The translations under genes were made by a program, and so were the position numbers. A stretch of 64,000 nt of DNA, taken from the sequence record PV662128.1. One strand, written 5' to 3'. The notes beneath the pieces are model-generated. The model saw only the letters and a program-made list of their open reading frames with translations. It had not been told where the DNA came from and ran no database searches. Within the stretch, counting starts at the first letter, position 1. Every line of letters starts with the position of its first letter. This document shows, in pieces, positions 31,703 through 46,458 of this stretch.

Positions 31703-34700
31703 TTATTTGCTCGTATACCCCATCCTAGGATCTGGAGCTTTCTGGTTCTGGATTTCTTTAAGCAATTGAGCGAGTAAATCGTTAGTTCTTCCTTGGGCTT
31801 GGACTTGAGCTATTGTACCCGGATCGGGTTGTTGAACCGGCTTAGCCAACGGGGTTGGTGGAGCAGAAGTACTTTGCTCAGTAGGAACCTTAACACGATT
31901 AAGTGGATTAGCCGGGTCTGATTTGTACGCGACTGTTCCCTCGCTCACCGGGGTAGAAGGTACCGCACCAATAGGCTTAGGTCCTTGGTTAACCGATGGA
32001 GAAGTAACCGCTGAAACTGCTGCGACGCTGTTAGCTGTTCCTACGTTTTCCGATTTCATCGTAGGCGGTTTGGCATCAGGACTGACAGAGGAAACCGAAC
32101 TCGGAACACTTTCCCCAGAAGAGGAAGGTTCTGTCCCGGCATTAGGATCTACTGTCAACTCATTGGAAGTCAAACGTTTCATATACTGCTGATAAAGTCT
32201 TGTCCTCGCTGGCATATCAGGTAAGCCATTGGGGTTAAGTCCTTGCGCCGCATATTCAAACGAGTTGTTCTTCACAATGGACTGAAGCCGTTTACCAGTC
32301 CCGCCGTTGGAGAGATACCAGATCAAGGTTTTCGCCATGACTTCTGGATCAGTGGAAACCAACTCTGGATTCTTAACGAGGTCTTTCCCCGCATACTGAG
32401 AGGCAGCTCTGAAGTTATCCTTACCCGTAAGCTGAATGAACCCACGGCCTCTGTAGAGCCATCCATCGTTAGGACCACTGTTACCCATCCTACCACCATA
32501 AACCGCGTTAGCGATGGCCTGAGGCCCTCCAGCTACGATCTGCTGGGCTTGACCCATAGACTTCACTCTACCTGGGAAAATTTCCAACAACCGACCTGGC
32601 TTGTAGTTCATGTTTTCCGCGGTATTTTTAAATCCTCCGCTTTCAAAGTTAGCCAAAGCCAACATTTCGGCAATAAGACGAGGATCTGTGAAACCGGCCT
32701 TAATCATCTCCTTCATGATTAATTGCTCTGCGGCTTTCTGGGGGACACTGACGCCTTTGTCTCCGCCTCCCGATCCACCTACCGGAGCGACACCAGAAAG
32801 ATCAACTGTTGACGTATCGGTATTACCCGTAATAGGTTTATAGTTGATAACTGGCTGGCCGCCCGCGATGACGTTATCGCTCGTTGCCGCAGTCGCAACA
32901 GCCTGATTTAATCCACCCTCACCCATTGAGTGAGCCGAAGTATACGGAACGACTTCTTTGGGTCCAGAAGCTTTAACTTCTTTGTCCCCATAATTCAATT
33001 TCGCATATTTCGCAGCGGTATCAAGGTTGTTAATGATTGCTTTGACTTGAGGTGTAATCGAGCCAGAAGTTGTATTAGGGAACGGAGACCATTTAACCTC
33101 CCAAACGGAAGTCGGGGTTTTACCGATATTCACTTTGAGCCCTAAAAGCTCTTTTGCGAAATCAAAAGCGTTAGTGGCTGTCATAGACTTCCAACCCGCG
33201 CTAGGTTTCACCCCCCTCATGATCCTCACGTATTTCACCCATGCCATACAGACTGGGAGGAAACGATCCCTGAACCATGTACACCATTGGTTAGCTTGGT
33301 CGTCGGTTATTCTGAATGAGTTCTTAAAGAGGTTATATACCGCACCTGTGGTAGAAGTAAATCTTGCATCGTTACCGATTACGCTGATGTAATCCTCACA
33401 ATACCGTTCTAACTTCAACACAGCTTCAACACGCCATGGGATGTGTTCCGTGTCACCGTAGGCCGCTAATCTCAATGCGGTTATCCCGGCCAGAGGCTTA
33501 TCGCCCCCTGGTAAAAGATCGGTGATGTTGATTTCCATGACCGATTTTGTTACCGGATAACGTTTATTGATCTCTTCAATATCAGAACGATCCTCGTACG
33601 TCCCACCCACTCTCATTTTAAGACTAGACCACCAACCTGCCTTCTCAGATTTTTCAACCTGTTCAGCGGAGGTCTTCATGGTCACGACGCCTTCTTTCTC
33701 TATCCCCTCAGCCGTTCTTCCGTGTCTTTCGTTAAAGCTTTTCAGTTCGTCCAAATACAACCTAACCTGATTAATGGTTTGGTCTTTACCCATTATAGGC
33801 GTGGCTTCATCGAACTGAGCGGCTATCTGATAAGGATAAGGATTGATGGTACCTATTCTGTCATTGATGGTGGAGACAGTAGAGTACAATTTAGCGTCGG
33901 TCGATTTATCGAACGTCTCAAAATCCCTATACCCAGCGGTATCGATCGCAGAAGCATAAGTCAGGAAAATAGGTTTGAAACGAAGATTAAACCACGTAAA
34001 GTAAGCCTGCTGTTGACCCTTGTCATTGGCTTGAGGTATGAAGCTTTGGAATATCTGTTCGAGAGGAGCTGATTTGGCTATTGAAGCCACCCCAGCGGTT
34101 ACGACGACATATTCACGTAAAGCTTCTTCGGCAGATCTCACCTTAGCGGCTAAATCTGACTCGACGTCCTTGATACCATATTGAGCCATACGAAGTTTGA
34201 ACTGCGACCCTTTCCCTTTGGCGTAATACTTATAGACCAAATACCCGGCACCTGCAACCGCCCCAATCCCCAACGTTACTGGATTAAATAACAGAGGAGC
34301 GACGGCGGTAGCCAAAGCACCTGTGCCAGATACAATAGCTGACCCGGCAGCACTCGCACCAGAAGCAATGGCCGATCCGATACCGAGGTTAATCCCCATA
34401 GCTGACATGGCGCTAGAACCTAAAGATACCGCCGAAGCTGCAGTAAGCGTGTTGCTCGCTACATCCTTCCAGTTAGTGCCTTCGTGCTCTTCATTGGTAG
34501 AGTCGAGGTACATTCCTAATCCAGCGGTAGCCAAACCCGCTAAGCCGAATTTAAATGCTCTTCCTCTACCTACCCTACCGCCTCTGGTTCTTCTTCCTCT
34601 ACGTCCCCCTGAAGCTCCTCCTGCGGCATCAACGATATCATCAACACCATCGGACGCCCTACGGCCTAACAGACCAACAGTGAGGATCTTAGCTAACGAC

Positions 34701-37700
34701 GTTAATCCACCTACAATAGCTGGCAAAGTAGTAATGCCGAGGGTTAAGAATTTGGAGAGTTTAACACCAAGTCCGGCGACCCCACCCAAAATAGTTCCCA
34801 TGGGGTTCTTAACGAAACCCAAGAGACCATTAAGGAATCCGCCACCTTTCTTCTCTTCATCGGGAGAACCGGAACCTCTCTCTCCTTCTCCACGGCCGGC
34901 AAGATCGATGATGGCGTCTTGATAACGAGATTCACGTTCGGCTTTCGCTTTACGTTCCTTATCTTCTAAGGAGTTTAAACGAACGTCGTCTGTGTTTCCC
35001 ATTCGACTTGTTTCGTTAACAATATCCGCCTTGATATCCGGCATGTCGTTAATGTCATAACCAAACTTACGGCAAAGCAGAGCGTAAATACGATCGACCG
35101 AATTGGTAATAGGCGTATAGTCCGCGGTTACAAGATCATTGATCTTATCCCCAGCTCGCTTACCATAGCCTTTAGCTCGATCACCCAGTTTCCTACCCAG
35201 GTCAAGAAGTTTACCACCCATTACTCCCGTCATACGTTTGAGGGATTCTATTTTCATTCCCCCGGATGTAATGAGCCCATCCTCGTATTCGGCTTGGGTA
35301 ATAATAACGTCGCCGTTCTCATCATACACCGGTCCGTCGATATCTCTCCAACCCTTTACAGGAACGACGCTACCGTTCAAACGTTTGAAGTATTTACCGT
35401 TCTCAAAACCCTTCCTTGTCAGAACAGGGGAATCCTCTCCAACTCGATAAACATCCATTTGGGTTATTCGATTGGTAATACCCTGACCTATGCCTTTCAA
35501 TCGGTTAAGAGGATCTAACCAGTTAAAAAGTTTTAATCCGGCCGATTTCACCGCGTTTAAGCCACGAAGCACGACCGCTTTGCCTTCGGCACTGAACAGT
35601 TTGCCCGAAAGACGTTTAGCGGAGATCACGACCTTGGTTCCGAGATCAACGATCGATCCTTTGATCTCTTTCCAACTGGTGATAATTTTCTTTAACACTT
35701 TGTCGTAATACTGACGGGCTCTGAGTTTACGCGCTTCGAGTATCGGATCTTCACTCTCCCCATCGTAAATGTCTTCATCGTCACTGACGTCTCTGGCGTC
35801 CGCCATACTACGAACTTTGGTATATAACGCCCAGGCTGCAGCGCCGCCACCGATCAACGCTGCCGTTTTGGGATCGTGGATCGCCAATCCCGCTAACCCA
35901 CCTAACATCCCACCCAGCATCAGTGGTTCGTGAGCCAGCAGTTTATCCATGCCCGCACTGAAAATATCTTTAATCCCACCAAGACTTTTAATGCGGTCGA
36001 GGATGGTTTTCTTCTGTGCGGTATCAGCGGCATCTTCAGCATCAGTTTTGGGCTTATTCACCTCGGCTGGCTGACGAGAAAGGATTTGTTTTAGGACTTC
36101 CAATTGCTCCTGATTAATATCCCTTATTCCCATTACAGAATCCGTTAAAGATTTAACTTGCTCTGGGCTTAATCCATTTCCGTCTTGTCTACCAGGAATC
36201 CCGAGTTTAAGCTGCTCGGTGAGTTCCGATAGGGCGGTAACCAGTTTGCCGGAATCCTTCCCGGACAACCCGCGACGGTTATTGATAATGGTTTTCGAAT
36301 TACCCCCACCCATTCCACCACGAGTAGGGAGAGGACCTACGTCATCCTCTTCGATAAGCCCTTCGTTACCATTAAGCTCTGATTTTAATCGATCCCATAT
36401 CGCATCGGTGTTAAAGAAATCTGACCCGTTTTCACTATTAATCAAATTCATTTCTCTTAATAGTGGATCGTAACCAGCGTTTCGTAACAAATCGATTTGC
36501 TGAGAAATATTAGGGAGGTAACCTTTGAGGTTTTTGGCTCGCAGGCTAAGATCGGCCGCCAAACGTTTACTTTTAGCAGTGGGCATAATCAGCTGAGCTT
36601 TAATGCCAGTCACCCCGGATTGTTTAGCCGCTTCAATATGCTGATCAGTTAGTCTGAATGATCCCCGCATCACCTGTTCAATTTCTTTACGAACAGAGGG
36701 GGTTAATCCTTCTTCGTCTTCCATCCCGAAATAGTTGAACGGGTTAAACCCTTTATCTTGGTCGACGTCCCTCGCCAAACGATAGGATAAGAAACGTTTA
36801 GCTTCTGGTGACAACGTTCCATTTTTGTCAATAGCGGAAACCATGTCGGACGTACCTGAGGCCAGTCCACTAAATTCTCTGCCGTTCAACAGATTACGCT
36901 TAACGGCGTTTTGGGTTTGTTTATGGCTTAAGAACTTCCCACTGTGGTAATCGAAACGTTCTTCTTTCAGGTTATCGTTACCCGTACGAATTTTTTCCAG
37001 ACTTAGATGAAGCTTAGCGAACCACCCAGGAATGATCTCATTTAACGTACGATCGGATTGACCGCTCCAGTAGCTGGGCTGAGTCAAATCCATCAAGTTA
37101 CGTTTCTTGAGTTCGTACTGTTTACCACGGGAATCGTTGATATTAAAAGAAAGATCGTTTAATCTATTTCCCAGGAAATTTTTACCTGTTTGTTTTAAAC
37201 GCCACGCACTTTCACTTAATGGTTTTTCACCGGGAGCAAGTGAGTCAAGGTAATCGTCGTAGGTAGAAAAGTCTTCTTCGTAGTTAGCGTTATTGCGGAG
37301 AATCGTTCCTGCTAAACCAGCCGCGTTAGTTCCGGCGTATGACAGAACGCTACCCAGCTGTTCCAACTTGCGGTATTGCCGACGGATATTCTTGGCTTCT
37401 TTTGGATAGAGGGTCTCGAGTTTGTTAATAAGCTTAGCACCCTGCCCGGATTTAAAGAAAGCTGGGCCGTTCTCGATGACCTCGTTAGCTAGCATCTGCC
37501 CGATAATGGTTCCCATATTGAGACCCATTCCCTCGGACATCTCCATCCCCATTCTACCAGCGCCAACCATTCCGCTTAAACCAGAAAGCATCCCTTCTCT
37601 GGCTTCTTTACCGAAAGTCTCGGACAGATAACCCATCACCCCGCCGGACCTATGTCCAATTGTGGAGAAGATGGAATCGCGTAATCTGCCTTTAGCCGCC

Positions 37701-38509
37701 ATGGCCAGGGAAGTTTTCTCGTAATCACTCTTACCTGAATTAAGGGTGATCTTTTTAAGCTCGTCAATCTGACGATGCATCGAGGCTTCCATGAACTTGT
37801 AATATTTAGCGTTGGTTAAATGCATCCTGGCCAATAAGTTGATTTTAACCGCATCGTTCTTAGCCTGGATTTTATTCTGGTAACGCAAAATACCTTGAAG
37901 AGTGGTCGAGATTCCGCCTAACAGGGAATTGGTTGCTTGCTGCTGGGCTAATTGACGACCGCCAACTACCGCAGTCATGCTGTTGATAGCCCGCCCAATA
38001 CCCACCATCGTTCCTGTCTGTTGAGCTGTGACCCCGGTAATAAACTCACTCAACCCTTCGTCATCAACATCACCCATGCTTGGATCAGAAGGAGTGTATC
38101 CCCCTTGATCCCAATGGCTAAAGTCCTTATTACTGAAGGTCTCCAACCCCTGGGCAATTTTATTAGGAACCTTGTCGCCGTGGCGGTCTAAGGTCATCTG
38201 AGCAATTGCCTGGAGATCTTCCACCATATCTTTTGATCCGGCTTTAACCTCACTTAGGATCTCCTGCTTCTTCCAATCAAACTCTCTTTTTAAATCAAAG
38301 ACAGTCCCAAATGATTTTGGGAGGAGCATTTTAGCCGTTCTCAACCTACCTTCTGAACTTCCTATCGTACCGCTGTGGAGCTCACTGAGAAAACCACTCC
38401 CCATGCTCGCAAAGAAACCTTTTTTAGGTGCGTTATCGAAGTCGAAGTCGAAATCTATATCGCCGGCGAACGGGTCGTCTCCCCAATCGTCGAAATCATC
38501 TTTAGCCAT
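31703..38509 (-). CDS. giant tail protein with C-terminal GH19 (chitinase-class) peptidoglycan hydrolase (phiKZ gp181 / tape-measure-like)
   Basis: 2268 aa; GH19 motifs LANFESGGF...ENMNY and NDGWLYRGRGFIQLTGKDNF; central hydrophobic Gly/Ala-rich segments; divergent from RNAP beta'. Confidence 0.85.
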   Translation of the reverse strand: MAKDDFDDWGDDPFAGDIDFDFDFDNAPKKGFFASMGSGFLSELHSGTIGSSEGRLRTAKMLLPKSFGTVFDLKREFDWKKQEILSEVKAGSKDMVEDLQAIAQMTLDRHGDKVPNKIAQGLETFSNKDFSHWDQGGYTPSDPSMGDVDDEGLSEFITGVTAQQTGTMVGIGRAINSMTAVVGGRQLAQQQATNSLLGGISTTLQGILRYQNKIQAKNDAVKINLLARMHLTNAKYYKFMEASMHRQIDELKKITLNSGKSDYEKTSLAMAAKGRLRDSIFSTIGHRSGGVMGYLSETFGKEAREGMLSGLSGMVGAGRMGMEMSEGMGLNMGTIIGQMLANEVIENGPAFFKSGQGAKLINKLETLYPKEAKNIRRQYRKLEQLGSVLSYAGTNAAGLAGTILRNNANYEEDFSTYDDYLDSLAPGEKPLSESAWRLKQTGKNFLGNRLNDLSFNINDSRGKQYELKKRNLMDLTQPSYWSGQSDRTLNEIIPGWFAKLHLSLEKIRTGNDNLKEERFDYHSGKFLSHKQTQNAVKRNLLNGREFSGLASGTSDMVSAIDKNGTLSPEAKRFLSYRLARDVDQDKGFNPFNYFGMEDEEGLTPSVRKEIEQVMRGSFRLTDQHIEAAKQSGVTGIKAQLIMPTAKSKRLAADLSLRAKNLKGYLPNISQQIDLLRNAGYDPLLREMNLINSENGSDFFNTDAIWDRLKSELNGNEGLIEEDDVGPLPTRGGMGGGNSKTIINNRRGLSGKDSGKLVTALSELTEQLKLGIPGRQDGNGLSPEQVKSLTDSVMGIRDINQEQLEVLKQILSRQPAEVNKPKTDAEDAADTAQKKTILDRIKSLGGIKDIFSAGMDKLLAHEPLMLGGMLGGLAGLAIHDPKTAALIGGGAAAWALYTKVRSMADARDVSDDEDIYDGESEDPILEARKLRARQYYDKVLKKIITSWKEIKGSIVDLGTKVVISAKRLSGKLFSAEGKAVVLRGLNAVKSAGLKLFNWLDPLNRLKGIGQGITNRITQMDVYRVGEDSPVLTRKGFENGKYFKRLNGSVVPVKGWRDIDGPVYDENGDVIITQAEYEDGLITSGGMKIESLKRMTGVMGGKLLDLGRKLGDRAKGYGKRAGDKINDLVTADYTPITNSVDRIYALLCRKFGYDINDMPDIKADIVNETSRMGNTDDVRLNSLEDKERKAKAERESRYQDAIIDLAGRGEGERGSGSPDEEKKGGGFLNGLLGFVKNPMGTILGGVAGLGVKLSKFLTLGITTLPAIVGGLTSLAKILTVGLLGRRASDGVDDIVDAAGGASGGRRGRRTRGGRVGRGRAFKFGLAGLATAGLGMYLDSTNEEHEGTNWKDVASNTLTAASAVSLGSSAMSAMGINLGIGSAIASGASAAGSAIVSGTGALATAVAPLLFNPVTLGIGAVAGAGYLVYKYYAKGKGSQFKLRMAQYGIKDVESDLAAKVRSAEEALREYVVVTAGVASIAKSAPLEQIFQSFIPQANDKGQQQAYFTWFNLRFKPIFLTYASAIDTAGYRDFETFDKSTDAKLYSTVSTINDRIGTINPYPYQIAAQFDEATPIMGKDQTINQVRLYLDELKSFNERHGRTAEGIEKEGVVTMKTSAEQVEKSEKAGWWSSLKMRVGGTYEDRSDIEEINKRYPVTKSVMEINITDLLPGGDKPLAGITALRLAAYGDTEHIPWRVEAVLKLERYCEDYISVIGNDARFTSTTGAVYNLFKNSFRITDDQANQWCTWFRDRFLPVCMAWVKYVRIMRGVKPSAGWKSMTATNAFDFAKELLGLKVNIGKTPTSVWEVKWSPFPNTTSGSITPQVKAIINNLDTAAKYAKLNYGDKEVKASGPKEVVPYTSAHSMGEGGLNQAVATAATSDNVIAGGQPVINYKPITGNTDTSTVDLSGVAPVGGSGGGDKGVSVPQKAAEQLIMKEMIKAGFTDPRLIAEMLALANFESGGFKNTAENMNYKPGRLLEIFPGRVKSMGQAQQIVAGGPQAIANAVYGGRMGNSGPNDGWLYRGRGFIQLTGKDNFRAASQYAGKDLVKNPELVSTDPEVMAKTLIWYLSNGGTGKRLQSIVKNNSFEYAAQGLNPNGLPDMPARTRLYQQYMKRLTSNELTVDPNAGTEPSSSGESVPSSVSSVSPDAKPPTMKSENVGTANSVAAVSAVTSPSVNQGPKPIGAVPSTPVSEGTVAYKSDPANPLNRVKVPTEQSTSAPPTPLAKPVQQPDPGTIAQVQAQGRTNDLLAQLLKEIQNQKAPDPRMGYTSK

Positions 38510-38529: not shown

Positions 38530-39975
38530 ATGCAACCTACTAATATTACGTTATTGAACCCAAACAAAGTGGCTTGGGCTCTCATGAAAGCCGTGACGTC
38601 AACAGACGTCCATGAGGGGATGACCAACAACCTTCATGAAGATGGTTTATACTCTCCAACAATCTTCGGTCGTGTCGGTACCGACCAACGAGATAAAACT
38701 CAATCTTACATCAATGTTAAGATTCCTGTCTTCAACCCGACTTATTTTAAGGCTTTGATTGGGTTAAAGGGTTTATATCTCGGAATAATCAAAGGGACGG
38801 AATACGCCCTTTGGGACGCATCAGAACGCGACTTCATAAAATCAAACCTCCTGGAAGGAGAAACCGGCTACGGTTTCTTTATGCGTCACTTTTACGACTT
38901 AGAACCTAAGTTAAACGAAAGTTATAAACGCAAACAGCGCGTAGAACTCTTTAATAAATTTAAAGACATCGCGTTGACTAAAAACATTATTGTGCTGCCG
39001 GCCGGTATTCGTGATATCCAGGTTGAACCCAACGGCCAGATCGTGGAACCTGAAATAAATGATTTCTATCGTAAACTGATCTTCCGTAGCCGCAGCGTGG
39101 TTATCCAGGAAGGTGAAGAAGACAACCCGATTTACGATAACATCCGTTGGGCGATTCAAAGCGTGTTCAACGACATCGACGATTATATCTTCCGGCTGAT
39201 GGAAGGTAAGCGCGGATTCTTACAGCGCCGAGTCTCAACTCGTGGTGTTGTCGGGGGTACTCGTAACGTTATTACCGCTCGTAAAGTTTCTGTTGCTGAT
39301 GCGGATGATGATAATGGGGTTGACGTCAACACCACAGATATCGGGATGTATCAAGCGTTGCTGGGTTTCCAATACGTCGCGCGATATGCGTTACTTAAAG
39401 GCTTCTTAAGCCGCGTGTTTACGGTAGGGTCAAGTACAGCTAAACTCGTCGACCCCAGAACGTTTGAATATCAGTACGTGGAAGTCGAGAGCAACATTGT
39501 TGACAAATGGTTGTCAGCCGATGGACTCACCGCTTTGTTCAACGGATTCGGTACCAGGCACTTGCGGCATAAACCGATCAAAATCAACGGCTATTACATG
39601 GGCCTGACCTATGATGACGGTAAATATGTCAAGTTACTCGGTGACGTAACCGAACTTCCTCCTGGGTTTGATAAGAAGTTCTGTAAGCCGTTAACTTACA
39701 TGGAACTCTTCTATTTAAGTTGTGTCGAAGAAATAGAAAAGAGGATGCTTCAGGTTACCCGTTATCCGATTACTGGGATGGGGTCCATCTATCCTAGCTT
39801 CATCAAAATCAAAACAACGACTAACGCCCAAAAAAGAATTATTTTAGATGATTACTGGGAAGAAGGTTATCGTTGCACATACTACCCAGTCCGAGAAACT
39901 AAACCAGATTATTTCGACGCCATGAGTGTCGATGGCAGTCGGTTAGGTTTATTGGGTGGGGACTTCGATGGCGAT
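38530..39975 (+). CDS. rpoC: virion RNA polymerase beta' subunit (phiKZ gp180-like), exon 1
   Basis: DGLYSPTIFG, VLPAGIRD, GKRGFLQ, VTRYP, and ends in GGDFDGD (catalytic DxDGD); joins exon 2 at 41713; spliced product 537 aa. Confidence 0.9.
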
Positions 39976-41712
39976 TTTTGAAAGTATGTGTTTTGATTAA
40001 TGCAAGAGTGAATGGACCGTCTAAATCTCTATTATATGTGGATTTATAATAGGGGGTTTTGATGGAACGTTTTATTAAGTTTCAAGGCAAATCTTTGGTT
40101 GTGTCGGACCAAGAAATTTTTGATATTCATAAGAAGAGACGCATTCCTATTTTTCAAAAAAGCAACACTGAAAAATATTTCTTTCTTGATCTAAAAGACG
40201 GAATTAAGAAAGTCGACTATGGTTTATTCTTACTTTTCATGGACAAAAGGTTTTTTCTGCCATTTGATCTTTGGGAGAAAGTAAAAGTCGATTTACTTAA
40301 TGACAAAGACGGATTTACGCGATCTAATTTGTATTTGGTTTATCCGGAAGAAACGATTGAATATCCAGATAAACCCGGTTACAGTTACATACCCGGGTAT
40401 GAGCTAAACGTTATTAACCGCTCAGGAACCGTTTACCGGATCCCCGATGGGAAAGAGTACTTACCGTCCGTTTCTGATAAGAAAAAGAAAGAGAATAAAG
40501 AATACGTTTATACTTTGGTGAGAGTTAACGAGGGTAAAGTCACAGCTAGAGTACTTCATAGACTTCTAGCGATAACTTTTAAAAACCCTCCTAAGAAATA
40601 CCCTAAGTTGGTAGTCGATCATTTAAATGGTAAAAAGTGGGATTACAGACTCTTAAATTTGGAATGGGTTTCTTCCGCAATAAACAATTTAAGGGCTGTT
40701 AAAAATGGATTGAGGGAAGACGGGTTTCCTATTCTAGTTAAGGATAAGAAAACCGGTAATATTTCTGAGTATTTCAGTCTGACTGAATTCGCCAGGTGTC
40801 TTAAAACACACCCCCAATGTGTGGTGAACGGTAAAAATAACCCAAACCAAACAATGATAGGGCGATACATCATCAAAGATGTCGATGATGATAGACCTTG
40901 GGAATACTTCGAAAATATCCCTCTTAATCGAGAATCGGTTAAACTTAAAGCCAAACATGTTATCACCGACGAGATTTCGTTTTACCCCAGTTTTAAATCG
41001 GCCTCTAGACTCACCAACACGACCCAAAGTATGATTATGAATTACTTTAAGGCTAAATCCGAACCCGCAATTATCAACGGGTACGAGTGGAAGCTAGAAA
41101 CCGACGACTCCCCATGGTTCTCGTTTTCCCCATATCAAATTGAAATTTATAAGCGTGGGTTACATCGTCACACACGCGTTTATAAAGTAAGTAATCTGAT
41201 AACCGGGGAGAAATGGGTCGAGTACGGTTGGAAAGGCATATCGGCTATTTCCGGTGCGAATAAAAGGACCGTAATCAATGCCGGGATCAACTCCACAATC
41301 CTTAAAGATAAATTTAAACTTGAAATATTGCATTAATAAACACATCTCAATAGTCCCACCAGACGAGAAATCTCTGGTGCGTATCTCTACAAAGTGCTGG
41401 TAAACCCACAAAAGTTCTACGCCTAGAGATAGGAGCCGATAAGGCAGAAACAAGGTAGAACCTGGTCTATGCGAAACAATATAGCTAAGGACCGTTAACA
41501 AGGGGCGCTCAGCAGCCAGGCTTTCTTAATAAAAGAAAGTAAGGTTCAACGACTAAGACCTAGCCAGTCTGTACTCTTACTAAGGAAGTGAGGGGAAACG
41601 AAGAGAGACCTAAGTCGGGCACTAGTCCGATACGGTTATGATATAGTCTGCTCCCTAATAGCACTAGGGCGGGTGTCTTAGCACACCGGGTACTGGAGTA
41701 CCGGACAACAGG
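39976..41712 (+). mobile_element. group I intron (1737 nt) in RNAP beta', encoding an HNH endonuclease
   Basis: 5' exon ends in U (GAT|), intron ends in G (ACAACAGG|); core elements AAAGTGCTGGTAAA (P), CTCAGCAGCCA (Q), GTTCAACGACTA (R, 41544-41555), ATGATATAGTCT (S, 41638-41649); removal gives in-frame DFDGD|QLNSNS. Confidence 0.9.
40062..41336 (+). CDS. intron-encoded HNH homing endonuclease
   Basis: RVLHRLLAITF, VVDHLNGKKWDYRLLNLEWVSSAINN; NUMOD1-like repeats (YFSLTEFARCL, YPSFKSASRLT); ATG 40062 after AGGGGG. Confidence 0.88.
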   Translation: MERFIKFQGKSLVVSDQEIFDIHKKRRIPIFQKSNTEKYFFLDLKDGIKKVDYGLFLLFMDKRFFLPFDLWEKVKVDLLNDKDGFTRSNLYLVYPEETIEYPDKPGYSYIPGYELNVINRSGTVYRIPDGKEYLPSVSDKKKKENKEYVYTLVRVNEGKVTARVLHRLLAITFKNPPKKYPKLVVDHLNGKKWDYRLLNLEWVSSAINNLRAVKNGLREDGFPILVKDKKTGNISEYFSLTEFARCLKTHPQCVVNGKNNPNQTMIGRYIIKDVDDDRPWEYFENIPLNRESVKLKAKHVITDEISFYPSFKSASRLTNTTQSMIMNYFKAKSEPAIINGYEWKLETDDSPWFSFSPYQIEIYKRGLHRHTRVYKVSNLITGEKWVEYGWKGISAISGANKRTVINAGINSTILKDKFKLEILH

Positions 41713-41880
41713 CAACTTAACAGTAACTCCATCAACGGAGAGGATGCTATTGCTGAAGCTAAAGCTTTAATGGGCAGACGCGATTACTACATCACCGGCA
41801 CAGGACAATTCCTTTATAGTCCAACGGTGGAACCTCACGAATTCTTATTCCGAAATCTCAGTAACGGACTCAACCTATGA
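41713..41880 (+). CDS. rpoC: virion RNA polymerase beta' subunit, exon 2 (missing from ORF track)
   Basis: QLNSNSINGEDAIAEAKALMGRRDYYITGTGQFLYSPTVEPHEFLFRNLSNGLNL*, 56 codons; its TGA overlaps the beta ATG (ATGA at 41877-41880). Confidence 0.88.
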   Translation, partial: QLNSNSINGEDAIAEAKALMGRRDYYITGTGQFLYSPTVEPHEFLFRNLSNGLNL

Positions 41881-44800
41881 GCGTATTATACCAACAGTTC
41901 TTCCGTAATTTTGTTCTTAGGAAAAAACAAGAAATTACAAATCCTAAGTTTCACCATCTGACGGATATGGTGTTGCCGAGAGAATCGGTAATGATGTATC
42001 TACCGAAGACGCAAGAAGATATCGGCCCAAGTACCGAGGAGCCCTTAATAGGGACTTACCCTGATGGGGTTAACATTTATTTCAACAGTCTTTATATAAC
42101 CCCCATCGGAAGAACTCGACCCGTTCCCTTTAACGAAAAGCAATCTATACAGCTTTATCGTAAAAGCCATTTCAAATACAACTGGGCGAGGACGCTGTCC
42201 AACTACCTGAGCCGTCGTCAGGAACTATTGGTAAACAACATAGCGATGGGGCCTCATCGTCACCGTTATGTCTTCACTCGTTTTGTTCAGTTTGAACGAG
42301 CTTATAACCAACTGGCTTCCGGGATCGAAGCGGTTAAACAAATGAGTAAGGAAACGACCCGATATCAGTACTGGCGAATAGAACTTCCTCCAAGCGTCCC
42401 CGATTATCGTCAGCTACTGGTAGCGGTCGATCATTATAAGAAGGCGTTCAAAGACGGTGTTTATACTACCACTGACAATCAGGCGGTACTCCCATTTAAG
42501 GGTTACGGGTCTTATTGGATTATGGACTGGTATCTCTTCTTGATAGGCGAAAAGAACTACAGTCTGTTTAATCGCTTAGATAAAGAAGAAATGGATAAAC
42601 TCCACATCATCTTTAGTCATAATGGGCTCAGCTGGGTAGTTAATCTCGGCATCGTCTCTCAATGGATGGAAGAACTTAACGACAAGCACGGCAATCCCAC
42701 CAGTATGCGTGTTAACGCGGCTAAACGGTTCCTGCTTGGATTTAGGGCTCTGATAGCGGGCGGCACGCTAAGTGAAACCATAGAGGAGAAACCTCATGCC
42801 GCAGAGAATGTCGGATTGGGTACTGGAACGCCAGAAGAGGAAAGAAGAAGCCAGGAAGTTAATAAGGAATCAGAAGAAGAACCGCTGGATCTCGATGAGT
42901 CTGAAGAGATTACTGATCAGTCTGTTACTATGCTTGATCTTTTCATGGGCAGCAAAAAGGCTGATACAGAATCTGATGATGACCAAGGAGGAGAGGATCC
43001 AGGAGGAGCTGATGAGAATCACGGAGAAGAGTGGGCAGCAGCGGTCGACGATGAATTACTTTATAACGCCGAAACGGAAGGATTAGGGGAAACCAAGAAA
43101 GTTATTTTCAGTACCCCGGAATCCGGCATCCTGAGAGCCTTAGAGCAAAGAGCCAAGGCCGGGACATTAACTGTTGCGGAACAACGTTATTACACTAATC
43201 TCGCGCAATCATACAAAACGATCAAAATGCCTAACGGTGAAAGTCTTGAAAGTTTTGTTAAGATTGATCAGGCCAAACTCCGCCACCTTCCTGCTAAAAT
43301 TGCTCCTGAGATGAGAGGGATCATCGACCCTTCTCAGCTACAAAGTAGAGCGACGAATCTTAAAACGAAATACTCTGAAGAATTCCTTAACCGGGATATC
43401 GCTGGGATGATTCTTAACGTTCAGAACGCCGGTATCGTTTTAACCGATCTGAAACGTGAACGTATTGTCAATGCGGAATCAGCTTACGACGTTTATACAA
43501 TGAACGTTCATCCGGTTGGTGGATCGCCTAAGACCGCGATGTTCCGTATCCCCAAAATTGACAAAGACGGAACCTTCACTGTCGATGGGGTAAAACAGCA
43601 TCTTCAACTTCAGCGTATGGAAATACCGATTCGTAAGATAAACTCGGAGCAGGTTGCTTTGACGAGTTATTATGACCGCAAGATCATGATGTCTCGTTCT
43701 ACCAAGGTCGCCGACGATTACGGATTGTGGCTGAACAAGCAGCTTATTCTGTTGGGTGAAGCCGGTAAAGTATCTGGGGTGTTGGGCGATGTCTATAATC
43801 GTAGTTACGCTGTTCCTCGTACTTATTCTGCGTTAGCCAAACGGTATCGGTCATTAAAGGCGGGCGGGATTGAATTCAACTTCGATCTTTCTAGTCTTGT
43901 TGGATCAGAGAAAGAAATCAATAAGCTGATTTCTCCTAACTGGGTTCCGGTGGCTAAAGAAGGTGACGACTTCATCTTTATGGATGATGGCGGTAACCTT
44001 TATAAAGATAAGACGCACATTGGTTCTTTCGAAAGCCGCTGTGGAATTGACACGACGAAGGCCCCAGTCGATATCGTTACGGTGAATGTAAACGGATACG
44101 CTTTCCCTATCGGGGTAGTGCTCGCTTACTACTTCGGATTCGACGAACTTCTTAAAGCACTCAATGCTGACTATCGGACCGTTCCGGCCGGTGAGAAAGT
44201 TCGGATGGGTCAGGACGAATACGCGATAACCTTTAACGATGAAACGCTCATTTTCAACAGACGAGATAGTTTAACCGCACTCATTATGGGTGGGTTCCGG
44301 AAGTTAGCGAATTTGAGTAACTTCTCTCGCTATGACCTAAACACGAAAGGCGTGTGGGTGCCGGCTATCGGGGATAAGAAAGTCAAACCAGGTCATTTTG
44401 ATGAAATGCGTTTGATGTTCGAAATGTTCATCGATCCTATCACCAAATCCGAACTGGTTAAAAGGGGTTATCCGACCGAGCTTCATTATCTCATGATCGA
44501 AGGCGTCAAAATGCTGAACACCGATCGGACTGCTCACGAGATAGAATTAACTGAGCAACGTTTCGTTGGGTATGAACGTTTCGCCGGACGGGTCTATAAC
44601 GAAATTGTTAAGTCGACTCGTCAATTCAGGAATAAAGGTAATGACAAACGTTTCACCTTCGATATGAACCCTGAAGCGGTTATCATGAGTATCATCACCG
44701 ATACGAGTGTAAACCTAGTTGAAGAGGTTAACCCCATCCACGAAATCAAAGAACAGGAAGTTGTTACCTTTGGTGGCACTGGTGGGCGAAGTGAAACGAC

Positions 44801-45024
44801 AATGGTCAGACGTACACGTGGTCAGCAAGAGAACTATGCTGGGGTTATCTCCGAGGCTGGTAAAGACTCCGGTAAAGTTGGGTTCGTGAGTTACTTAACG
44901 AGCAACCCTAAGATCGCCGATTTCCGTGGTAACGTCGACCTAAGCATGCCTGACACTCTGAGCGGCAGACTGTCGGTAACATCCAACCTTTTAGCTCACT
45001 CGACCTCCGATGACCCCAAACGGT
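41877..45024 (+). CDS. rpoB: virion RNA polymerase beta subunit, N-terminal/middle part (phiKZ gp178-like), exon 1
   Basis: RIPKIDKDGTFTVDGVKQHLQLQ, EEVNPIHEIK, VTFGGTGGR, SEAGKDSGKVG, HSTSDDPKR; spliced product 1418 aa. Confidence 0.9.
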
Positions 45025-46458
45025 TAACTGTAATATTTTCCTGAGTACAATATTATGTTGAGACTCAGGAGCAAATTAAGATGAAACCAATTGAGTGTAA
45101 AGATTTTCCAGGGTATTACGAGATACCCAATTTTTCCAAGTACTGCATTAATAAAAAATCAGATATTATTCATAAACGCAAAAACAAAAAAATCAGACAG
45201 TACGACGTTAAATCTTCTGTGACGTCCAGGCCAGAAACCGGGTGTTATAAAAGAGTGACGATGTATTCTGATGATAAAAAACTCCACGCCTTTTCGGTCC
45301 ATCGGTTAATGGGCTTGGTGTTTAAACATCCTGGTGCCGGGTTTCACTCTCTACAGGTCCACCACGGAGATGGGATAAAATTTCATAACGACATCGATAA
45401 CTTAGAATGGGTTACACCCAAGACCAATATTGTTTTAGCAAACGATTATTACATGGGTAAAGCTAAAATACCCGTCCAAGCTAGGTCTAAAAACGGTGAA
45501 GTTCTAAATTTTTCTAATCTAAGTGATTGTGCTAAATTACTCGGGATCCATAGGACAACCCTTATCTCCAGATTAAGTACGTTTGGAGAAAAGTTTGTTC
45601 ACCCAGAGGGCTATCAACTGAGGTACGGAAATTCCGATAAGCCATGGGTTGCACCAGACGAAGAATCAGCTAAGGACTTAGATGAGTTTTACTCGTCACC
45701 CATTTTGGTAAAAAATCTCAACACTGGCGAAGTGAGGGAATTTAAAACAGCCAAAGGCGTGATGGAATTAATAGTAAGATCTCCGTCAAGCATAAGTACT
45801 TTGAGTAATGATTCGACTCAACCCATTGTGATGGGTAAAGATAACGTACCGTACATTCTCATAAAAAAATATTCTGGGGTCGATTTCAGGAGAGTTGACG
45901 ATCCAATGAATGATTTTGTCGAACAACAGACCAATACCAGAACGGTAGTTGCGACGAATGTTACGACTAATGAGAAGAGAGTTTATACGACCGCGCAGGC
46001 GTGCGCATCTGATTTTGGAATAGGGAAAACTACACTTAATTGGCGTCTTAAGAAACCCATCCCTGGTGTTTTCGACGGATGGATTTTTAGATATTACGAG
46101 GCCCGTATGGGAGGAAACACCCATACGCAATAATCTTTAATTGTTCTGGGACGATCTCGAAGACTCTCATACCAAAGCGGAATACGAAAGTATAGACGTC
46201 ATGGTTTTAAAAGTTGAGAAGAGAGACGATCTAGCAGCGAAGCACCTACGTATCTTCGAGAGAAGAGATAGGGTGAACGTTCAACGACTATGGGTGAAAC
46301 TCCCAGTAGAGAGTACATGATGTAATCTCGAAACAGGATTCCCTTCGAGTGTGCTGTAGAAGCACAATACTCATGGGTGAAATATAGTCTGCTCCCTACG
46401 GCGACGTAGCGGCGGGTGTCATAGCACACCGGGTTGATGGAAGCAACTGGACAATAGG
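45025..46458 (+). mobile_element. group I intron (1434 nt) in RNAP beta, encoding an HNH endonuclease
   Basis: 5' exon ends in U (CGGT|), intron ends in G (ACAATAGG|); P AATTGTTCTGGGA, Q CTAGCAGCGAA, R GTTCAACGACTA (46279-46290), S GAAATATAGTCT (46379-46390); splice gives DDPKR-S-LFSGVQQSQ, matching RpoB DDANRALMGANMQRQ. Confidence 0.88.
45081..46133 (+). CDS. intron-encoded NUMOD4/HNH homing endonuclease
   Basis: DFPGYYEIPNFSKYCIN (NUMOD4-like), SVHRLMGLVF, QVHHGDGIKFHNDIDNLEWVTPKTN; NUMOD1-like repeats; AGGAG upstream. Confidence 0.9.
   Translation: MKPIECKDFPGYYEIPNFSKYCINKKSDIIHKRKNKKIRQYDVKSSVTSRPETGCYKRVTMYSDDKKLHAFSVHRLMGLVFKHPGAGFHSLQVHHGDGIKFHNDIDNLEWVTPKTNIVLANDYYMGKAKIPVQARSKNGEVLNFSNLSDCAKLLGIHRTTLISRLSTFGEKFVHPEGYQLRYGNSDKPWVAPDEESAKDLDEFYSSPILVKNLNTGEVREFKTAKGVMELIVRSPSSISTLSNDSTQPIVMGKDNVPYILIKKYSGVDFRRVDDPMNDFVEQQTNTRTVVATNVTTNEKRVYTTAQACASDFGIGKTTLNWRLKKPIPGVFDGWIFRYYEARMGGNTHTQ

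Follow-up and report, generated by a model that had tools for sequence, protein, structure and literature searches.

The window analysed here was a stretch of 64,000 nucleotides (nt) of Raoultella phage VB_ZK_P1 (PV662128.1, 257 kilobases (kb)), a relative of the Klebsiella phage Miami. In this phage, the virion RNA polymerase (RNAP) gene encoding the beta' N-terminal subunit was found to be interrupted directly after the codons of the catalytic, Mg-binding DFDGD motif. An earlier reading of the window, made without database searches (the sequence-only reading), had placed a group I intron with an HNH endonuclease immediately after DFDGD, and this proposal was borne out by the boundaries of the insertion, by ribozyme homology and covariation and by the HNH motif. 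The interrupted gene was found to contain the following features:

38530..39975, plus strand: exon 1 of the beta' N-terminal subunit gene (homologue of phiKZ gp180), 482 codons with GGDFDGD at the end, from the list of open reading frames (ORFs)
39975..39976, plus strand: predicted 5′ splice site, U39975 followed by U39976, placed by the intronless Miami allele
40062..41336, plus strand: intron-encoded HNH endonuclease gene, 424 amino acids (aa) from ATG, with a TTG at 40059; Pfam HNH_3
41712, plus strand: predicted terminal G (omega G), the 3′ boundary being set by the intronless allele
41713..41880, plus strand: exon 2, 55 codons (QLNSNSING...GLNL) and a TGA stop at 41878-41880

The product of the ORF 38530-39981 was found to match annotated virion-associated RNAP beta' subunits of many jumbo phages (97% of length), and the exon 1 product matched PHROG 2986 'RNA polymerase beta subunit' (E 9e-200) and was 99.6% identical to Miami gp232. 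The upstream neighbour was a 2268-aa minus-strand ORF (31703-38509), and the order of giant protein, beta' N-terminal subunit, HNH ORF, about 0.5 kb of apparently non-coding sequence and large beta-like gene was that of phiKZ gp181-gp180-gp179-gp178. The interrupted gene was assigned to the virion RNAP beta' subunit because of this homology and gene order, in agreement with the sequence-only reading; phiKZ gp180 is a DFDGD-bearing virion polymerase subunit present in the particles (PMC10612078). The following polymerase gene starts with an ATG at 41877, which overlaps the stop codon of exon 2.

The unspliced frame had been read as GGDFDGD-F-stop, and the ORF 38530..39981 was found to end in LGLLGGDFDGD-F-stop, with GAT at 39973-39975, TTT at 39976-39978 and TGA at 39979-39981, this in-frame TGA being reached two codons past the predicted 5′ splice site. 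The exon 2 frame starting at 41713 read QLNSNSINGEDAIAEAK and contained no ATG, GTG or TTG between the last upstream stop and 41713, so that the exon 2 piece would be untranslatable alone. In Miami the gene was uninterrupted (537 aa) and its junction read ...GGCGAC followed by CAACTTAACAGT, i.e. GGCGAC-CAACTT. A megablast search with a 3471-nt query spanned 1734 base pairs (bp) in each of Miami, KPN8, YC1 and BUCTxx100, a deficit of exactly 1737 nt, and because of this deficit and the Miami junction the inserted block was set at 39976..41712 (1737 nt), which is precisely the block whose excision (U/...G/) had been proposed. Its edges were U39975 and G41712, and its removal restored a frame colinear with Miami, the 482 and 55 codons adding up to 537, the same length as Miami gp232. 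The exons were 96.5-97.2% identical to those of the four relatives, all of which had an empty, intact site. The joined junction GGCGAT-CAACTT, as predicted, differed from Miami only in the last exon 1 codon (GAT vs GAC), and between -133 and +78 the two phages differed at -70 and -1 only.

The 3′ 370 nt of the insertion are, by homology and covariation, a group I ribozyme. The Rfam model RF00028 matched 41306-41669 with 34.5 bits; the E-value was 1.3e-6 when 1.9 kb were searched and 4.3e-5 for the whole window. For comparison, gp180 homologues were collected from IMG/VR and GenBank and were found to comprise 72 uninterrupted and 13 distinct interrupted loci; RF00028 scores of introns in the same gene were 92 bits in phiKZ, 85.5 in L073, 79 in L055 and 60.5 in L082, followed by FishSpeaker (53.9), 2 TSL-2019 (51.7), VP4B (51.2) and EL (51.1). 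A leave-one-out profile hidden Markov model (HMM; nhmmer), built from 12 related intron cores with the window excluded, matched 41352-41707 with E 7e-47 over model positions 2-354 of 365, and its sole other match in the 64 kb was a second intron in the adjacent polymerase gene. RNAalifold on six homologues gave 82 pairs with compensatory changes in 39, and recovered P2, P3, P4, P5, P6a, P7.1, P7.2, P8, P9, P9.1 and P9.2 independently of their placement by hand. P7 was missing from this structure because it forms a pseudoknot; its strands GACUA/UAGUC were invariant in the six-sequence alignment and the P4 strands were conserved. By hand, every helix from P2 to P9.2 could be placed on the window sequence, the P3-P7 pseudoknot included, and the P, Q, R and S elements named in the sequence-only reading were found as P/Q (P4) and R/S (P7). 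The elements were placed as follows:

41357..41379, plus strand: P2 hairpin with GAAA tetraloop (RNAalifold, compensatory changes in 4 pairs)
41384..41648, plus strand: catalytic core (Rfam alignment, hand-built helices, RNAalifold)
41384-88/41602-06, plus strand: P3 (hand-built helices, RNAalifold)
41395-400/41509-14, plus strand: P4 (Rfam alignment, RNAalifold)
41405-07/41503-05, plus strand: P5, with a P5 extension of about 80 nt at 41414-41494
41516-44, plus strand: P6/P6a (hand-built helices; P6a by RNAalifold)
41551-55/41644-48, plus strand: P7, invariant GACUA/UAGUC
41557-69, plus strand: P7.1 (compensatory changes)
41574-94, plus strand: P7.2 (compensatory changes)
41607-37, plus strand: P8 (hand-built helices, RNAalifold)
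41638-43, plus strand: J8/7, reading AUGAUA
41653-69, plus strand: P9 (hand-built helices, RNAalifold)
41672-87, plus strand: P9.1 (hand-built helices, RNAalifold)
41689-41702, plus strand: P9.2 (hand-built helices, RNAalifold)

The intron was considered IA-like because it has P7.1 and P7.2, helices placed after P7 and before the 3′ strand of P3; in the general classification of group I introns this arrangement marks subgroup IA. The GAAA loop of P2 was invariant. P8 contained a CCUAAG...UA(C/U)GG motif and the P5 extension a UAUGC...GCUAAG motif, and these two motifs presumably resemble GAAA-tetraloop receptors of the 11-nt kind. An intein was ruled out by stops throughout the frame, and a group II intron by the lack of any match.

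The sequence-only reading had drawn P1 as a local hairpin (GCGAU-UU/AA-GU(A)UGU). This hairpin did not stand: RNAfold gave 0.0 kcal/mol (open chain) for 39970-39995, and a fold offered both options picked a long-range pairing instead. The local sequence was unconserved, and a GUCC guide was found just 5′ of P2 in 13/13 introns and was invariant in the six-sequence alignment. P1 therefore likely forms across the ORF, in a long-range arrangement modelled as follows:

39970..39981, plus strand: P1 5′ strand, comprising the last exon nt with GAU and the first intron nt, pairing with 41346-41357
39984..40009, plus strand: 5′ strand of the P1 extension, pairing across the ORF with 41318-41345
41318-41345 and 41346-41357, plus strand: 3′ strands of the P1 extension and of P1, with the GUCC guide at 41353-41356

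For these folds the two ends of an intron were taken together, or the whole segment for ORF-less introns. The cofold of the P1 extension was found to have -24.6 kcal/mol, its duplex standing at z = -3.4 against shuffles, and in the minimum-energy structure predicted for the window U39975 pairs with G41353 of GUCC. The last exon U paired with the G of GUCC in 8/10 related introns (unconstrained minimum-energy folds, window included), and in all 13 the stretch before GUCC complemented the intron's own 5′ end, the sequences themselves differing. The exon share of P1 is essentially the codon GAU. The stem 39984-40009/41318-41345 was also considered as P2 and was dropped, being continuous with P1; in ORF-less relatives a single hairpin runs from the splice site to GUCC.

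Two further features were observed around P1. In all 13 introns the exon 1 frame runs into a stop 0-4 codons past the 5′ splice site, mostly as an immediate TAA, TAG or TGA, and such an early stop would keep ribosomes off P1. The nucleotides GGAC at 41702-05, 7 nt upstream of the terminal G, are a perfect complement of the GUCC guide, and RNAalifold pairs both; in introns inserted after the second Asp codon of the motif (site B) a GGAC-type pairing with the guide would cross the 3′ splice site (G/GGC). Positioning of the 3′ splice site and mimicry of the exon are both candidate roles for GGAC in the modelled fold. The GUCC/GGAC closing helix of RNAalifold was not adopted as a core helix, GAAC being present instead in phiKZ, 2 TSL-2019 and L082.

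The HNH ORF (40062-41336) was found 5′ of the ribozyme core, as had been stated, and in the P1 model it occupies the distal loop of the extended stem. It scored 28.6 bits with Pfam HNH_3 (cut-off 24.8) and matched PHROG 59, and its only solved relative was I-HmuI (1U3E, E 0.0034), which shares the N-terminal sheet and the HNH motif. The residues H187, N199 and N208 were invariant across 7 relatives and the length was comparable to theirs (416-440 aa). Identity was 33-37% to the HNH ORFs that EL and FishSpeaker carry in this gene, and 32.5% to the counterparts in PDCC-1 and 2 TSL-2019. By homology, the 424-aa ORF is an I-HmuI-like HNH endonuclease with an intact catalytic motif. Directly upstream, the sequence was found to contain:

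40029-40036/40045-40052, plus strand: 8-bp hairpin, with a Shine-Dalgarno-like GGGGG next to it at 40053-40057 (read off the sequence)

The hairpin beside GGGGG may limit translation of the endonuclease.

From these features a mechanism was proposed. In the pre-mRNA the exon-end GAU would pair with GUCC 1.4 kb downstream, leaving a U-G wobble at the cleavage site, and the long irregular P1 stem would close around the endonuclease ORF. The core from P3 to P9 (41384-41712) would then catalyse the two transesterifications, and ligation would give ...GGCGAU-CAACUU... and a 537-aa protein colinear with the Miami gene, spanning the junction peptide LGLLGGDFDGDQLNSNSINGEDAIAEAK. The HNH enzyme, probably a nicking one, would cut the DFDGD-coding DNA of intronless relatives in mixed infection, and repair from intron-bearing genomes would copy the intron in (homing); where repair failed, the competitor would lose an essential virion enzyme. 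Confidence differs between these steps. Splicing is predicted with high confidence, P1 is a folding model, and the target and activity of the endonuclease are deduced from its family and position. Homing into intronless relatives is plausible, and it is reasonable to suppose, as the sequence-only reading did, that the nuclease attacks the active-site codons of competitors.

Among known systems, the closest precedent is the phiKZ gp180/gp179 intron; phiKZ introns tied to gp179 and gp180 are reported in PMC11512511 with reference to Ceyssens 2014 and Mesyanzhinov 2002. The novelty claimed in the sequence-only reading was overstated in this respect, an intron at the DFDGD motif of the same gene being already on record for phiKZ in that text (PMC11512511). 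The phiKZ and window introns share the host gene, the gene order, an exon 2 of 50-60 codons, the ribozyme family, the GUCC guide and the long-range P1, and the phiKZ core contributes to the HMM; the phiKZ gp179 HNH protein is homologous to the window ORF (26.7% identity over 67% of the query). The phiKZ intron, however, lies after the first Asp codon (LGAD/FDGD), 12 nt upstream, and the two ribozyme cores are only about 47% identical.

The introns of FishSpeaker and VP4B were found at exactly the site of the window (after D3, GAT/CAA), that of VP4B without an endonuclease ORF. The ribozyme of phiKp_32 was the most similar to that of the window (80%, blastn); this intron contained no ORF and was inserted 6 nt upstream (D2). 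The EL intron was likewise 6 nt upstream (D2), and that of 2 TSL-2019 was 12 nt upstream (D1).

I-HmuI, from the intron of the SPO1 DNA polymerase gene, nicks one strand near its insertion site. Like the window protein it is a phage intron-encoded HNH enzyme with the VVDH...NL.WV...N signature and an N-terminal DNA-binding sheet. It has 174 aa, whereas the window protein has 424 aa, with extra N-terminal (about 100 aa) and C-terminal (about 200 aa) regions; the host genes differ and the similarity is weak (E 0.0034).

In the survey of gp180 homologues, 13/13 interruptions were found inside the 15 nt coding DxDGD, directly 3′ of an Asp codon, and were distributed over three sites:

Site A (after D1), n=8: phiKZ, 2 TSL-2019, PDCC-1 (5′ end), L055, L062, L066, L073 and L082
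Site B (after D2), n=2: EL and phiKp_32
Site C (after D3), n=3: window, FishSpeaker and VP4B

A group I core was found by Rfam in 12/12 interrupted loci scanned; the remaining locus, L062, shares 90% identity with L055 over the core. In 12/13 introns the Asp codon directly 5′ of the insertion was GAT, whereas in 67 distinct uninterrupted alleles, which mostly have GAC, GAT was found in 3/67 (D1), 23/67 (D2) and 19/67 (D3); with relatedness ignored, the Fisher p value of this excess before introns was 5e-7 for site A and 0.03 for site C. The window keeps GAT at a codon that reads GAC in its closest intronless relatives. This preference fits a P1 whose exon part is GAU.

On the tree of cores the sites were interleaved: the window (C) was sister to phiKp_32 (B) with support 0.996, 2 TSL-2019 (A) grouped with EL (B), and the PDCC-1 core was 92% identical to that of VP4B (C). 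The intron must therefore have changed site repeatedly, which is explained if the guide needs only GAU, since retargeting then needs no change in the ribozyme. The HNH family was common to introns at all three sites, and ORF-less introns of the same family were found in phiKp_32, VP4B, L073 and L082, so that loss of the endonuclease appears to be common in this intron family. The odds are about even that one ribozyme lineage, with an invariant GUCC reading GAU, has colonised all three DxDGD Asp codons of jumbo-phage virion polymerases. If so, DxDGD would be a hot spot with introns hopping between its codons, and an occupied codon may destroy the endonuclease targets of its neighbours, i.e. introns would compete for a 15-nt site. 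No description of the three-codon pattern was found in the literature searched, which excluded key phiKZ papers. This distribution, together with a GAU-reading guide, would give a testable model of group I intron movement to new sites.

Two of these loci showed further peculiarities. In phiKp_32 (L002 2900-3345), which belongs to the same phage group, the ORF-less 380-nt intron 6 nt upstream of the window's site had a cluster of 13 substitutions around it (-40 to +18), by which phiKp_32 differs from the window as well as from Miami. The exon 2 changes leave the QLNSNS peptide unaltered, and the cluster resembles a co-conversion tract left by a donor of greater divergence. In the Photobacterium phage PDCC-1 (L006 3423-5160) the 5′ end and the HNH ORF matched the site-A intron of Vibrio phage 2 TSL-2019, followed by a core resembling that of VP4B's site-C intron and a 3′ splice site at site C, so that this intron looks chimeric by sequence. 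The 12 nt coding YDGD were absent from PDCC-1 and its exon ended in GAC, so that two catalytic aspartates would be missing from the joined product. Possible reasons are an artefact of assembly, a gene that is defective, or unusual splicing.

The second intron of the window was found to interrupt the adjacent RpoB-like virion polymerase gene (41877 onward), after ...SDDPKR, and contained the following features:

~45025-46458, plus strand: second group I intron, RF00028 49.9 bits at 46075-46411; the Miami allele is continuous across it
45081-46133, plus strand: HNH+NUMOD1 ORF of the second intron, homologue of PhiPA3 gp210 (28.7% identity, E 8e-27)

Its junction is probably U45024/...G46458/C46459, which would give KR-S-LFSG against KR-A-LFSG in Miami. 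The HNH+NUMOD1 ORF was 100% identical in phiKp_32. In PhiPA3, the gp210 intron carries an HNH enzyme, interrupts the RpoB-like gene (homologue of phiKZ gp178) at the DD motif and mediates interference (Birkholz et al. 2024, PMC11620839). Compared with the insertion in PhiPA3, the second intron of the window is placed 9-10 nt further downstream. The sequence-only reading had cited PhiPA3 as a precedent for the beta' intron; an intron HNH in an RNAP gene does exist there, but the gene is the neighbouring beta-like one and the counterpart is the ORF of the second intron, so that the precedent applies to the neighbouring intron, whose HNH is the gp210 homologue. The HNH ORF of the beta' intron was only 22% identical to that of the second intron, and PhiPA3 was absent from its best 40 listed matches. 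The PhiPA3 system and the beta' intron have in common a group I intron with an HNH enzyme, a virion RNAP gene, a phiKZ-like phage and catalytic acidic residues, and differ in that the latter lies in the beta' DFDGD codons and not in an RpoB-like gene at the DD motif.

Overall, 39976-41712 was read as a mobile IA-like group I intron inserted after the third Asp codon of DFDGD and working by the mechanism proposed above, with a probability of roughly 85%; VB_ZK_P1 is a viable isolate, which was counted in favour of a working intron. Several observations weigh against this reading. The RF00028 score was below the gathering score of 50 bits, the cut-off for family membership, and because of this a default Rfam scan of the window at gathering thresholds gave no match, both introns emerging only with E-value thresholds; the low score arises because the model contains no P5 extension, P7.1 or P7.2, so that about 130 nt count as insertions. 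J8/7 reads AUGAUA, whereas the five other aligned introns and the Rfam consensus read AAGAUA, and the presence of U41639 for the conserved A might weaken docking of the P1 substrate. Clean pairing of the exon in P1 was confined to the 3 nt of GAU, with two more nt paired past a bulged C, and the minimum-energy folds of the other site-C introns, FishSpeaker and VP4B, did not contain the GUCC pairing. No convincing P10 could be drawn on the window intron, a 3-bp option (UUG/CAA) being unconvincing because it conflicts with the long-range P1. Splicing is here a prediction from the sequence, and recent homing is not demonstrated by the flanks, which contained no co-conversion tract apart from the change at -1.

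Among the alternatives, the intron might be chiefly an interference weapon in the manner of PhiPA3 gp210 and not a selfish homing element, its HNH enzyme damaging the DFDGD-coding DNA of co-infecting intronless relatives, with fewer infectious virions as the outcome. A related phage family provides a precedent (PMC11620839), an intact and near-identical target is present in four sequenced relatives, and the gene under attack would be that of an essential virion enzyme (PMC10612078). That precedent, however, involves another gene and another lineage of endonucleases, since gp210 has its homologue in the ORF of the second intron. In PhiPA3 the effect required alleles about 60% diverged and phage nuclei kept separate, whereas the alleles here are about 97% identical, which favours ordinary repair and homing. 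Interference as the chief role is rather unlikely.

It is still less probable that the intron is a decaying relic, splicing poorly or only with a helper, or with an HNH enzyme which no longer cuts, and inherited only vertically. The sub-threshold RF00028 score, the A-to-U change in J8/7 and the ORF-less derivatives in phiKp_32, VP4B, L073 and L082 would agree with decay, whereas the helices P2-P9.2 were all found intact with invariant P7 strands, the HNH ORF was full length with its catalytic residues, the U at -1 was maintained against the GAC of the closest relatives, and the phage is viable with an essential gene at stake. Lastly, the idea of a free-standing endonuclease cassette that split the gene into 483-aa and 55-aa polypeptides assembling unjoined, which has behind it the natural splitting of jumbo-phage polymerase genes into several subunits (PMC7598289) and the separate 'hypothetical protein' entries of the GenBank record, is very improbable given a complete group I core between the pieces, a 55-codon piece without a start codon after the preceding stop, a break inside the catalytic loop, and a U...G boundary rule that is obeyed with the frame restored exactly.

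For the mobile group I intron preferred here, the kind is already known and the element is unannotated in its record. In PV662128.1 (window 38530-46133, L003 8001-15604) the polymerase exon pieces and both HNH ORFs were annotated as 'hypothetical protein', with no intron features and no coding sequence over beta' exon 2. The beta' subunit would be better annotated as one 537-aa catalytic protein made by way of predicted RNA splicing, not as unrelated hypothetical proteins, and the same correction would apply to EL, FishSpeaker, VP4B, 2 TSL-2019 and phiKp_32, where the introns are also unannotated.

In VB_ZK_P1 two neighbouring virion-polymerase genes would each contain an endonuclease-bearing intron at catalytic acidic residues, and near-identical relatives of this phage have no such introns or an ORF-less copy. 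With alleles 97% identical, as against 60% in the PhiPA3 study, these phages may offer a natural Klebsiella/Raoultella system for weighing homing against interference competition, a question which that study opened. Of the metagenomic jumbo-phage contigs with a site-A intron, L055 (8885-9306) and L073 (8509-8924) were found to contain a second group I ribozyme with 55.3 and 46.7 bits, respectively, about 2-3 kb downstream and apparently in the neighbouring beta-like gene, so that the pairing of introns in the two polymerase genes recurs.

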